DNA of 64,000 nucleotides from Magallana gigas (taxonomy: Eukaryota): positions 59,644,001 to 59,708,000 of the forward strand of contig NC_088855.1 in NCBI RefSeq assembly GCF_963853765.1, read 5' to 3'. Shown here piece after piece: positions 57,397-63,369 of this stretch (within the stretch, counting starts at the first letter, position 1; each line of letters begins with the position of its first letter). The translations under genes were made by a program, and so were the position numbers. The notes below the pieces were generated by a model. It was not told the DNA's origin, searched no databases, and saw only the letters and a list, made by a program, of their open reading frames with translations.

Positions 57397-58489
57397 ATGA
57401 ATGAGACAACAATATTTCTTAGCCAAAGAGCATACAGCATGTATGCGTGCATGTGGCTACATTTAGTACACATGGGTTTAACTATGTGTACATTTTATAA
57501 AAAAGACTGGCTGTCAACTGGGCCCAGTGTCATTGAGAGTTCCTCACTGGTGTCTGTGTGGAGATTAAGATTTAGGAGCATGGACGGACAGACACTTAGG
57601 CACCCAGACACAGCCATTGTTTATTACAGGGTCCAATTTTTCTCTCAGCCAAACTGATTTAAACGTTGATTTTGTTTTAATGTTTGATGTTGTAAATAAA
57701 GTTTTATGTTCAATTGTTCCTTTTTACTTGTGATTGATAGATTGACTTGCTTTTCTTTTAAGATTTAAAATTAAACCACATAATCTGATATATTATAGCA
57801 TTTAGCAAAATATTTTTAAAAAATTATACACGCCTTGAATAGTGGCAACAAATGGAGATAATTTTAATTGCAATTAAGAAAATTAGAGATGAACCAGGAC
57901 CTATGAAAAAAAAAGAAAATCATGCATGTTCAGAACAACTTGGTCAGCGCCATATCATTGTCAATTCATTTCATGCGCACATCAAGAAAACTCTTCCGGT
58001 GGAATAACTTACATAATGGTGAATAATACAAAAACCAAAGAATTAAATAAAGAATGTTATTTATGTCTCTGCTAAAACCCTGCATCTGATCCTTTTAAAA
58101 CAAACTCTATAGTCGGAAGCAAATTGAAAGTGGGGGCTAGACTGGACTGATCTGAAATCTTGACAAGAAAAAAAAGGCTAAATCCCAAAATCATGAAAAT
58201 CCTAAGGGGGGGGGGGGGGGGGGGGGGGGGGGGGGCTAGTATACATATACTCCCCCTCCCCGGTTCCGACGCTTATCTTAAGTCTATGATAACTTTACCC
58301 ACCATATATTGCAGTCATATGAATTCATAATTTAGAATACTCAGTACTTGGTAATACATATGTATATGCTTTCGATTAGGAAACATTTTGGCGGGTTTAA
58401 TAGATTTGGGGAAGATGTACCCAACAATCATCGGGATCGGGGTTTAAAAATGCACGTGTTCGTGGTTTACTTTCTACTTTCGCTTTACA

Positions 58490-59546: not shown

Positions 59547-60319
59547 AGAAAGTTTCAATAAAAAGACAAATAGAACTCTTTAACAGCACAGTCTTTGTAA
59601 ACAGCAATAACAGATCAGGATACCCGAGTCGGTGAAACATTTCCTCAAAGAGTGAAACCAAAATGTACAAAATGACAGGAACCAATAACATCACAGAGTA
59701 AAAATAAACCCTGAATTAGCCTAGTGTTCTAACCCTAACCCAGTGTCAATGGAACCAAAATAGCAGAGAGTAGAGACAAACCAAAATCGACACAGTATTA
59801 ATAGAACAACAGCACAGAGTGAAAGACAGGCAGCACATAGTACTCTGTTCTGGTAACAGTGGTCTATTATTTTCACAAATAACTCAGTTAGATATGAATT
59901 TTTATTATTATTAATGATTTTTATCATTGAAATAGATATTAAACTAACTTCTTAGACCTACGTGTGTGACTAATAATTAATAAAAGGAAAAAAAAGACAG
60001 TAATCTGCTCAGTGTTTTTTACAATGTGGAGTGTAGCTGGCTTGAAAGTTTAAGCCTACAAAGTACCGGAAAGGAAAAGTGGGTATGTAGGTTACAGAGG
60101 AAGGGACATTACATTGAAGTGGACAGGCATAGCCTACATCCACTTCTTCAAAGAGAATAACCCCATGCTGGTACAAGAAAGGGGAGTGAACTATACAGTA
60201 AACAAAATGGGATCGAGGGACTTGCTCGTATTTTATATTACTTGGGACTCTATAGACCAACTCTTACTTTTTAAAAAAAATATTGACCTGGTACTTTATC
60301 CCAAACCAATCCTTGCTAC

Positions 60320-60933
60320 TTTAGTAGTATAGCTCCTGACTAGAGTTGCAGGTGTCCTGGTTCGATTCCCGATCCAGCAATATACTAGTATTTAAAATGT
60401 AATTATATGCCCATTCCTACTACATATGGTTCGTGGCCGTCCTTATTCAGGCAATATGAATAAGTCCCGGCAAGCTGAACTTGTGTTAATTGTGTCTTCA
60501 GGGTTAAAGACCATTTAAGGAGGGAGGAATGTAGTAGCTGGGGCTATATGGACCGTGTATATCGACCTGGGCATTTCAGTGGTAGAGCTCCTGACTAGAG
60601 TTGCAGGGGTGTTGGTTCGATTCACGGTCCAGGTATATATTTAGGATGTATCTGTATGCTCACCCCTACTACAGATGGTTTGTGGCCGTCCTTATTCAGG
60701 CAATATGAATAAATAAGTCCTGGCAAGGTGAACTTCTGTTCTGTCTTCAGAGTCAAAAACCATTTAAGGAGGGAGGAGTGTAGTAGTTGGGGCTATATGG
60801 ACCGTGGATATCGATCTGGACATCTCTGTGGTAGAACTCCTCAGTAGAGCTGCAGGGGTTCCGGGTTTGATTCTCACTATTGCCGCTCTATATTTCCTTG
60901 TATTTATATGCCCATTCCTCCTTTCCTACTACA
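60320..60933 (+). mobile_element. Tandem TRIM-like LTR array (LTR-int-LTR-int-LTR) with tRNA-like LTRs
   Basis: LTR2 60530-60673 and LTR3 60779-60933 start TGTAGTAG and end CTACTACA; each ~105-bp internal part starts with a TGG PBS-like motif and ends with the purine tract aaggagggagga; LTR1 (ends 60424) is partly deleted. Confidence 0.7.
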
Positions 60934-63369
60934 ATAACAAAAGATACATGAAAGATGGAAAGAAGGGTTGCAGGGACACCAGAGAGGAATAATAGTATTT
61001 TGTTATTACAGAAAGAGACCGGGGTCTTAGCGTTTGGTGATTAGTCAAGGGCGGGAACTGCTGGTGTATCATTATAAAATCAAGGACAGCATGATAGGTG
61101 CAGATCCGCATGCTCCAGTGATGATTCAAATAACCTAATACAAGTACTTGCTGGGAGAAAGAAAATAAAGTACAATGTGGTTAGAATGTAATATCCCAGT
61201 CATTAATGTGATGTACGCTGTAATTAATGTGTTGGTCTAAAAGGAACAGATGAAATCCCTGTTGTATACACAACCAAGTCAGGCAAAAAACTCACAGTGC
61301 ATGAAACTGTTTGTTCCGAGTACGACAATTATTATGCAAGAATTCTGTTACTCGTGCAGGGACAAACTGACGGCTTCAAATAACATGTAAAAAACGTAAG
61401 GATCATATTTGGTTTTGTGTGAATTTCTGGGACGAAATATTTGCATTATAATTTCCTTATACATATATGTGATCGTGTAATTTTTGTAACCAAACTTATT
61501 TTAAACTAGTACAACATAATGAACTTAAAATGATTGACATGAACAAAAAATTATAATAAAGACTGGATGAGCTAAAGTGTATCCAAACGAGTTTTAACTG
61601 ATTATTATTTGATAAATTTTTATCAAAACTACCAACAGGTTTTGAAAAGTGTTCCATATATCAATGTGGGACAAACTCTTTCTTTCAATTTAATTGTGCT
61701 GAATTCCTTAAAGCATTCCTCCCCGTCCCACTTTACTTGATGTATTATCTATGGTATAGATGTTCCCTCGTTTGTCTCCAGTGTTTGAGCGTCGTATCGT
61801 TCTTGATATACAATACCGGGCCAGCTCTCCATTCCTGGTGACACACGTCAACCCCTCCATTTACTAGATTGGGATTCAATTGTTCAGGTGTAAATTTCAA
61901 ATTAAAGTTTATACCTTACACCTGTAGAGACTCACTGTGGACGCTATAGATACTAGTTATAACCTCCTGCTGTGTCCAAATTCAGGAACGCATTTCAAAT
62001 TACAAAGGATTAACTTGCATTTTGTGAAATTTTTAAGACATTCCTGAACACAGAATTATTCTTCATACAGTTTATACACAATTGAAAACACTGATAAGTC
62101 TAGAATTATAAAAAGGGCGATGAATATCGAAAATATACATTTCAATGCTTACTTTAAATGAGTCTGTGGTACATATGATATTTCATCACCTATCTATTAT
62201 TGCAGCATTGTTGCATTTGTAGTGCGTTCGAATTGGATTTCGAGTTGCGCGGTCATATTATAGAAATATTTATTGTTTATTAGCTGTATATAAACATGTT
62301 CCTGGTGACAATAGTTCTCATATTATACATGGTCTTTAAAATTCGGACAATATAGGTTGGAACAATTTGTCCCAGCAACGGAGTTCCAGGCTATTGTGTC
62401 ACAATACATGTGATACGGTATAAAGTCATACAGTAAGAAGTAATTCCTATATAGACGTCGTGGGCCCAAAAAAAGGAATGGGTGTCTATCGGTTTATTAA
62501 AAAGATGTAAAAGGAATGGTGGAATTTATCTTATATGGAATATATATTGACGGCTAAAAGTCGCCAAAATTAAGATATAATTTTTAGGCAGTTATGATGT
62601 TCCTGAATCAGCAATCATTACTGATGTACCATGAGAAATTAATGTGCTGTCAAGAAAAGCATTCAAATTAGTCTCGATTATCGTATATATATCCGGTGAA
62701 GCAAAACTCTTTGCTAAGTTAACACTTTTTTATCCTGATACCAAAAATTGTTAAGAATTGTAACTCACTGAAAATTTGGACGGCTTCAAATAACGTGCCG
62801 AGGAATCCAAGTTTTGAGTGAATATTCAGGACAGCATATTTGCAATTTTTTCCTGTCTATATGATTGTGATCCATGAAATGTGTTCCTCAATTTTGACCT
62901 CTTTCCAAGTATTGCGCACTTAAGGTATCTCACTCGATCCTTTTTTGATTTCATTGCGCAGATGATCATTATATTTTAAACGAATATGATTTTATTTATT
63001 TAATCATCGCAAAAAGATCATTATTTCTTAATTACATAATATTCATAAAGAAAATCCATTTGAATTCAAGAAACAAGCAGGTTTTGGGAGAAACTATTTT
63101 TTCGTGCGGAATGCTTTTTATTATACTTTATATATATTGGGATATATTTTGAGAGTGATAGACGTTTAGCATAAAATCATGCAAATATGGAAAATGTCTG
63201 AATTTTTGAAGCCAAATTTTGCGATAATTATCGAAGTCATATATCTAAAATTTGACTTCACTTACCCCCATGTTTTATTATGTCAAAATGATACTGAATA
63301 CATATATCTAGACAACTGGATTAATTTTATAAAATTCCTTAAATTCAGAATGTTTTTTATTTCAAATCA

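Follow-up and report, generated by a model that had tools for sequence, protein, structure and literature searches.

The window analyzed here, a 64,000-nucleotide stretch of the Magallana gigas genome (contig NC_088855.1), carries at positions 60311 to 60933 an LTR-internal-LTR-internal-LTR array with a period of 249 bp. A DCTPP1-like gene copy precedes it, with its last ORF ~770 bp upstream of the array, which itself contains no ORF. Tandem Repeats Finder recovered the 249-bp period in 2.2 copies (60323 to 60873, 82% matches, score 709), and the boundaries of the parts were set by sequence reading (59900 to 61400), repeat finding, and alignment to the well-kept natural copy L005. Natural copies were used for all comparisons. 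An unbroken run of 30 G (58206 to 58235) stands just upstream of the DCTPP1-like ORFs. In a scan for bacterial promoters and terminators, irrelevant to the element, promoter-like sites were fewer than in shuffles and terminator-like sites were absent.

All parts of the array are on the forward strand. The first LTR (60311 to 60424) is recognizable over only ~102 to 114 bp, corresponding to about LTR positions 37 to 153, its 5' third being disrupted; its stretch 60311 to 60384 is 81% identical to 60566 to 60639 according to the repeat finder, and 60323 to 60421 reaches 84.9% against L005 by local alignment. A possible remnant of its head (the first 25 nt) is found at 60234 to 60258, with 18/23 matches to LTR positions 3 to 25, and is uncertain, since its local alignment score of 13 was also reached by the top-scoring one of 500 shuffles (mean, 6.7); ~50 nt of A/T-rich, partly duplicated sequence separates this trace from the rest of LTR1. 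Internal part 1 (60425 to 60529; 86% identity to the internal part of L005) carries a mutated tRNA-His primer-binding site (PBS), TGGTTCGTGGCC, at 60427 to 60438 and a PPT at 60517 to 60529. LTR2 (60530 to 60673, 144 bp) lacks ~9 nt of the U5-side pyrimidine tract and is 83% identical to the L005 LTR over 141 nt. It is followed by internal part 2 (60674 to 60778; 83.7% identity to that of L005), with the mutated PBS TGGTTTGTGGCC at 60676 to 60687 and a PPT at 60766 to 60778, and by the full-length LTR3 (60779 to 60933, 155 bp), 85.4% identical to positions 1 to 153 of the L005 LTR. The joints are regular: TGTAGTAG opens LTR2 and LTR3 at 60530 and 60779, CTACTACA closes the three LTRs at 60424, 60673, and 60933, the PPT AAGGAGGGAGGA starts at 60517 and 60766 and abuts the next LTR, and the PBS-like TGGTTYGTGGCC stands 2 nt past LTR1 and LTR2.

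A decayed tRNA-like unit can be followed in each LTR, at about 60310 to 60380 in LTR1, 60565 to 60635 in LTR2, and 60814 to 60885 in LTR3, where both the A and B boxes are mutated. The initial annotation had described a Cassandra-like TRIM in tandem array, with a tRNA-derived A/B-box unit in each LTR, and this structural reading is correct, as is its account of ~105-bp noncoding internal parts with a PBS-like start and a PPT, of which there are two. Its details fared unevenly. The repeat length of ~145 to 155 bp holds for LTR2 and LTR3 and not for the truncated LTR1. The A-box-like string that it placed in every LTR is present in LTR2 (60577), its exact form being absent from LTR1 and LTR3; the anticodon-arm string occurs in LTR1 (60335) and LTR2 (60590) and not in LTR3; and the exact B box occurs in LTR1 (60359) and LTR2 (60614), the LTR3 versions being mutated.

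Searching the genome (564 Mb, 29 contigs) with the array as query gave 51 scored matches out of 278 first-look candidates. Nearly all long matches were equivalent to window positions 60530 to 60933, i.e., exactly one LTR-internal-LTR unit, and such dispersed units were present on all ten large contigs. The dispersed copies have the structure LTR(153)-internal(~110)-LTR(153) in the 15 copies aligned, and the 16 copies aligned with their flanks show sharp edges at TGTAGTAG and CTACTACA and unrelated flanking sequences. Every full copy ends at CTACTACA, the equivalent of position 60933, with a 4-bp target-site duplication (TSD) immediately behind it. The LTRs have fixed TG...CA ends that form inverted repeats of 8 bp, the PBS TGGTGCCGTGGCC stands 2 nt after the 5' LTR, and the PPT AAGGAGGGAGGAA abuts the 3' LTR. 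Perfect 4-bp TSDs were found for 14/23 independent full or solo insertions and a match at 3/4 positions for 6 more, the chance of a perfect match being 1/256 per site; the TSDs in the aligned copies read TGTA, GATG, GTAT, CAAC, GTAT, ATGT, ATGC, TTAA, and ATTG. The LTR-internal-LTR structure is, thus, real and recurs genome-wide with TSDs far beyond chance, and the TSDs on complete copies that the initial annotation had proposed to look for are 4 bp long.

With a single LTR as query, 375 first-look candidates were obtained, the LTRs being 93 to 97% identical to the query. Ten fetched LTRs had no internal part within 400 bp, and these solo LTRs, also anticipated by the initial annotation, carry perfect TSDs in five cases (L065, L067, L068, L071, and L073, with GTAT, GTAT, ATAC, ACTA, and TAAA, respectively). 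Fixed ends, 4-bp TSDs, PBS and PPT, and solo LTRs altogether argue for integrase-mediated LTR retrotransposition and not for a SINE or a satellite. Arrays were exceptional among the copies examined, being limited to the one in the window and a second three-LTR array on contig 8 (L002). The latter is flanked by CTAA on both sides, indicating that such arrays descend from one insertion. As a separate observation, GTAT or its complement ATAC accounts for 5/14 perfect TSDs (GTAT at L007, L010, L065, and L067; ATAC at L068), which hints at a target-site preference of the mobilizing integrase.

The family to which these copies belong has been published. Kojima (2024, Biology 13:119, PMC10886601) described Helenus as tRNA-bearing TRIMs that occur in oysters and other bivalves of the Pteriomorphia and, in animals, make TSDs of 4 bp. 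Helenus-2B_CGi, a Repbase-style entry from Crassostrea gigas, is tabulated there with an LTR of 153, an internal part of 114, a total of 420, a TSD of 4, and a tRNA-His primer, the numbers for C. gigas being 260 for LTRs and 45 for internal parts. Diagnostic strings of 12 to 15 nt matched only the Helenus-2_CGi and Helenus-2B_CGi entries (Kojima 2024, DataS1): strings from the LTR head and LTR core were confined to the LTR entries of these two, and the PBS string to the internal entry of 2B. Compared by motif look-up and by eye, the natural copies agree with the printed consensus of 2B, the 3' LTR of L005 differing from it at 4/153 positions. The 153-bp LTR from TGTAGTAG to CTACTACA, the tRNA-like segment, the 4-bp TSD, the tRNA-His primer, and an internal part running from GA plus TGGTGCCGTGGCC to AAGGAGGGAGGAA are shared with Helenus-2B_CGi, whereas the window copy differs from it in its three-LTR array, its 14 to 17% divergence, its mutated PBS, the lack of a T4 run, and an internal part of 105 bp compared to 114 bp in the consensus. 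Among its relatives, Helenus-2_CGi has a nearly identical LTR but a different internal sequence (an internal part of this type was found in L018), and Helenus-2C_CGi has a different internal sequence and LTR flanks that cannot be aligned outside the tRNA-like unit; both have the tRNA-like core, the His-type PBS, and the PPT in common with 2B. We, hence, conclude, with a probability of about 95%, that the locus is an old, inactive Helenus-2B_CGi, a nonautonomous LTR retrotransposon (TRIM) of oysters, in the form of a three-LTR, two-internal tandem array. The initial annotation is, therefore, partly supported, right on structure and wrong in supposing the element to be uncatalogued, since the Helenus-2B_CGi entry already describes this structure, and a database entry of this kind is what it had itself named as refuting its view.

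The copy in the window is dead and goes back to one old insertion, which either had the LTR3-I2 form from the start or acquired it later. It is 83 to 86% identical to typical copies, which are 93 to 97% identical among themselves. The two internal parts are 92% alike and share derived changes, the PBS included, which fits the duplication of a single element. Its LTRs, however, are only 82 to 83% identical to each other; this is unlike the prediction of a single simultaneous duplication, the difference between LTR-LTR and internal-internal identity being marginal (Fisher P = 0.035). CpG decay was considered as the cause of the faster LTR divergence and set aside, because CpGs are too few (5 per LTR) and non-CpG divergence is 13 to 17% in all parts. 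Because LTR1 has lost its intact 5' end, no TSD is demonstrable for the window array, the best pair being ATTT and ATAA. By our proposal, arrays would arise from one insertion, either through unequal LTR-LTR recombination or as an aberrant reverse-transcription product.

Three other readings of the locus were weighed against an old Helenus-2B insertion. A tRNA-derived SINE (SINE2), dimeric or tandemly duplicated and mobilized by a LINE, would share with these elements a tRNA-like head carrying an A box and a B box, here found in the LTRs, and a short, noncoding, interspersed nature, and some copies are indeed 5' truncated (L019 to L023, L025, and L029 to L030). SINEs, however, have A-rich or LINE-derived tails, TSDs of variable length, and neither LTRs, PBS, nor PPT, while the dispersed copies have no A-rich or LINE-like tail (SINE-like tails being what the initial annotation itself had named as contrary to its view) and combine uniform 4-bp TSDs with fixed TG...CA ends and their inverted 8-bp termini, a PBS 2 nt past the 5' LTR, a PPT directly before the 3' LTR, and solo LTRs with TSDs, so that this origin is hardly credible. 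The 249-bp period of 2.2 copies would suit a local satellite-like repeat holding a tRNA pseudogene and unrelated to transposition, a reading made just as implausible by the single elements with TSDs on all ten large contigs and by the rarity of arrays among the copies examined. An older, uncatalogued sister subfamily of Helenus-2B would explain why the best nonself genomic match of the window copy is only 78 to 84% identical, why both internal parts share changes unseen in other copies (for instance in the PBS and just beyond it), and why the T4 run is missing. None of the window variants, however, occurs in another copy among ~50 scored matches, making private decay the simpler account, and identity exceeds 80% over the whole length, which by the usual 80-80-80 convention keeps the window copy inside the family; we consider a separate subfamily improbable.

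The role of the tRNA-like unit has to be read from younger copies, since neither ARAGORN nor Rfam called a tRNA in the window copy, where the unit is too decayed. Each LTR of the well-kept copies contains a tRNA-like cloverleaf of 72 nt in which both the A box and the B box are intact. The Rfam tRNA model RF00005 matched both LTRs of L003, L005, L006, and L017 over its full length at 40.9 to 50.4 bits, compared to a gathering cut-off of 29 bits. The fold given by ARAGORN is a cloverleaf whose anticodon loop has 8 nt and includes the four-base "anticodon" agag, which makes a working tRNA unlikely; cloverleaves with a four-base "anticodon" were called in 13 further LTRs. A T4 run is found at LTR position ~112 to 115, 4 to 5 nt past the unit, in nearly every LTR, and in most elements it is the only run of at least four T, once per LTR. 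An avoidance of T runs elsewhere was rejected, the elements showing no depletion (a mean of 2.0 T4+ runs per element versus 1.8 in dinucleotide shuffles); conservation is limited to where the run lies.

The unit is a putative RNA polymerase III (Pol III) promoter, the boxes of the window copy being partly mutated. Transcription would then start at the tRNA-like unit, with U3 corresponding to about LTR positions 1 to 36, R to the tRNA-like unit up to T4 (~112 to 115), and U5 to the rest, and the T4 of the 5' LTR would need to be read through by leaky termination. An alternative is that the locus is a Helenus TRIM whose unit is not a working promoter, the genomic RNA being a product of Pol II or of host-gene transcripts reading through and the unit being kept for RNA structure, packaging, or chromatin/insulator effects. 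The conserved T4 just after the unit speaks for this alternative, since an efficient terminator would stop Pol III after ~80 nt, before the internal part; the lack of a T4 after the unit in the 2C-type LTR L056 and the absence of experimental validation of Pol III transcription for Helenus (Kojima 2024, PMC10886601, section 4.1) point the same way. On the other side, the tRNA-like segment is ~88 to 90% alike between a 2B copy and the 2C-type copy L056, whereas the remaining LTR is barely alignable, which fits a constraint on the segment in master copies; both boxes are conserved among the Helenus families (PMC10886601), and the 5S-bearing analogue Cassandra is reported to be transcribed from its own Pol III promoter. 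We regard a unit without promoter function as a possible but doubtful reading. The window locus, being a dead copy, is of no help on whether Pol III makes the template of an LTR element and how it would get past the T4 of the 5' LTR.

The internal part of ~110 bp offers only a tRNA-His-type PBS and a PPT. Insertions bear TG...CA ends and 4-bp TSDs, and recombination has reduced some of them to solo LTRs. Reverse transcription and integration would probably come in trans from a Gypsy-type element. Helpers of the Gypsy type were already inferred for Helenus from PBS similarity (PMC10886601). The family PBS can pair with the first 10 nt at the tRNA-His 3' end (CCA included) and with two further positions. 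The corresponding tRNA T-arm/acceptor end occurs in the genome, in clusters, at 15 or more exact sites. Exact 17-nt tRNA-His PBS sites number 73 in the genome versus 0 for a control pattern, and their spread over about a dozen LTR families or ends (L031 to L060) indicates that tRNA-His is a widely used primer among oyster LTR elements.

A Gypsy element with the same primer type, a candidate for the autonomous partner that the initial annotation had proposed to look for, lies at C4:39,456,409-39,465,650 (L062:1048-10289, read together with L076). This 9.2-kb element has 949-bp LTRs without a mismatch between the pair, a 4-bp TSD (TCTG), a tRNA-His PBS, the PPT AAGCAGGGGGGA, and a pol of 1064 aa that includes RT, RNase H, and integrase domains. 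At least four further LTR pairs elsewhere are 99 to 100% identical to its LTR, and such near-identical pairs indicate very recent activity of the family. The LTR ends of the element, TGTAGCAG...CCTATTACA, compare to TGTAGTAG...CCTAYTACA in Helenus, agreeing with Helenus-2/2B at 7/8 positions at the 5' end and 8 to 9 of 9 at the 3' end. Apart from the ends, PBS, and PPT, no resemblance to this Gypsy was seen, the local alignment scores of the Helenus LTR and internal sequence being no better than those of shuffles. On these sequence likenesses, the Gypsy family is to be seen as a candidate helper of Helenus-2/2B and only as that. A joint model, in which this recent Gypsy family would mobilize Helenus-2/2B from a Pol III genomic RNA, with R formed by the unit plus T4 and with leaky termination in the 5' LTR, is proposed as a speculation that is, taken as a whole, rather unlikely. 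Another locus (L061:1700-8644, C3:20.685 Mb), where a repeat end ...CCTTACTACA is followed by a perfect tRNA-His PBS and, 2.7 kb downstream, by RT, RNase H, and tyrosine recombinase ORFs, was considered as a closer partner and dropped, its ORFs being Ngaro/DIRS-like and its terminal repeat present in only 7 copies; one of these 7 is inverted and lies 12.6 kb upstream.

Kalendar et al. are said to have presented Cassandra, in 2008, as a plant TRIM with 5S rRNA sequence in its LTRs. [quoted passage not shown] Helenus and Cassandra have been grouped as "TRIMp3" (PMC10886601), and Cassandra also forms LTR-internal-LTR-internal arrays (PMC7215508). Tandem arrays are known for the TRIMs Cassandra, biv-TRIM, and LTR-11_DR. 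The bivalve element biv-TRIM (Satovic et al. 2019, PMC6934838), found in species including Magallana gigas, occurs as solo repeats and TDRx_I(x-1) arrays, with repeats of 202 to 218 bp, an internal part of 77 to 80 bp, the PPT GGGGAGA, and the conserved TGATCCCAAAGGAC; a tRNA-like unit was not reported for it. Both its PPT and TGATCCCAAAGGAC (searched as a 14-mer with up to 3 mismatches) are absent here, and together with the different lengths of the parts this excludes biv-TRIM.

As a discovery, the locus is of little weight, since the Helenus TRIMs of oysters, this family, its 4-bp TSDs, and its tRNA-His primer were already published. What goes beyond the 2024 description is the young His-primed Gypsy with matching ends and the single conserved T4 after the tRNA-like unit. 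For genome annotation, Helenus LTRs score as tRNA genes (41 to 50 bits) and would inflate tRNA counts or pass as SINEs, and three-LTR arrays resemble tandem repeats of 249 to 262 bp. Some copies also lie within larger duplicated sequences. The Helenus-2B copies L003 (C6:15.216 Mb) and L004 (C10:19.819 Mb) are contained in a 2.2-kb interchromosomal duplicate of 99.1% identity, and L066 (C7) and L069 (C3) in one of at least 830 bp and 96.9%; these may be either segmental duplications or copies of a larger repeat carrying a Helenus insertion. At L020:1321-1777 and at C4:33,046,236-33,046,491, an inverted partial copy adjoins Helenus-2B head-to-head.
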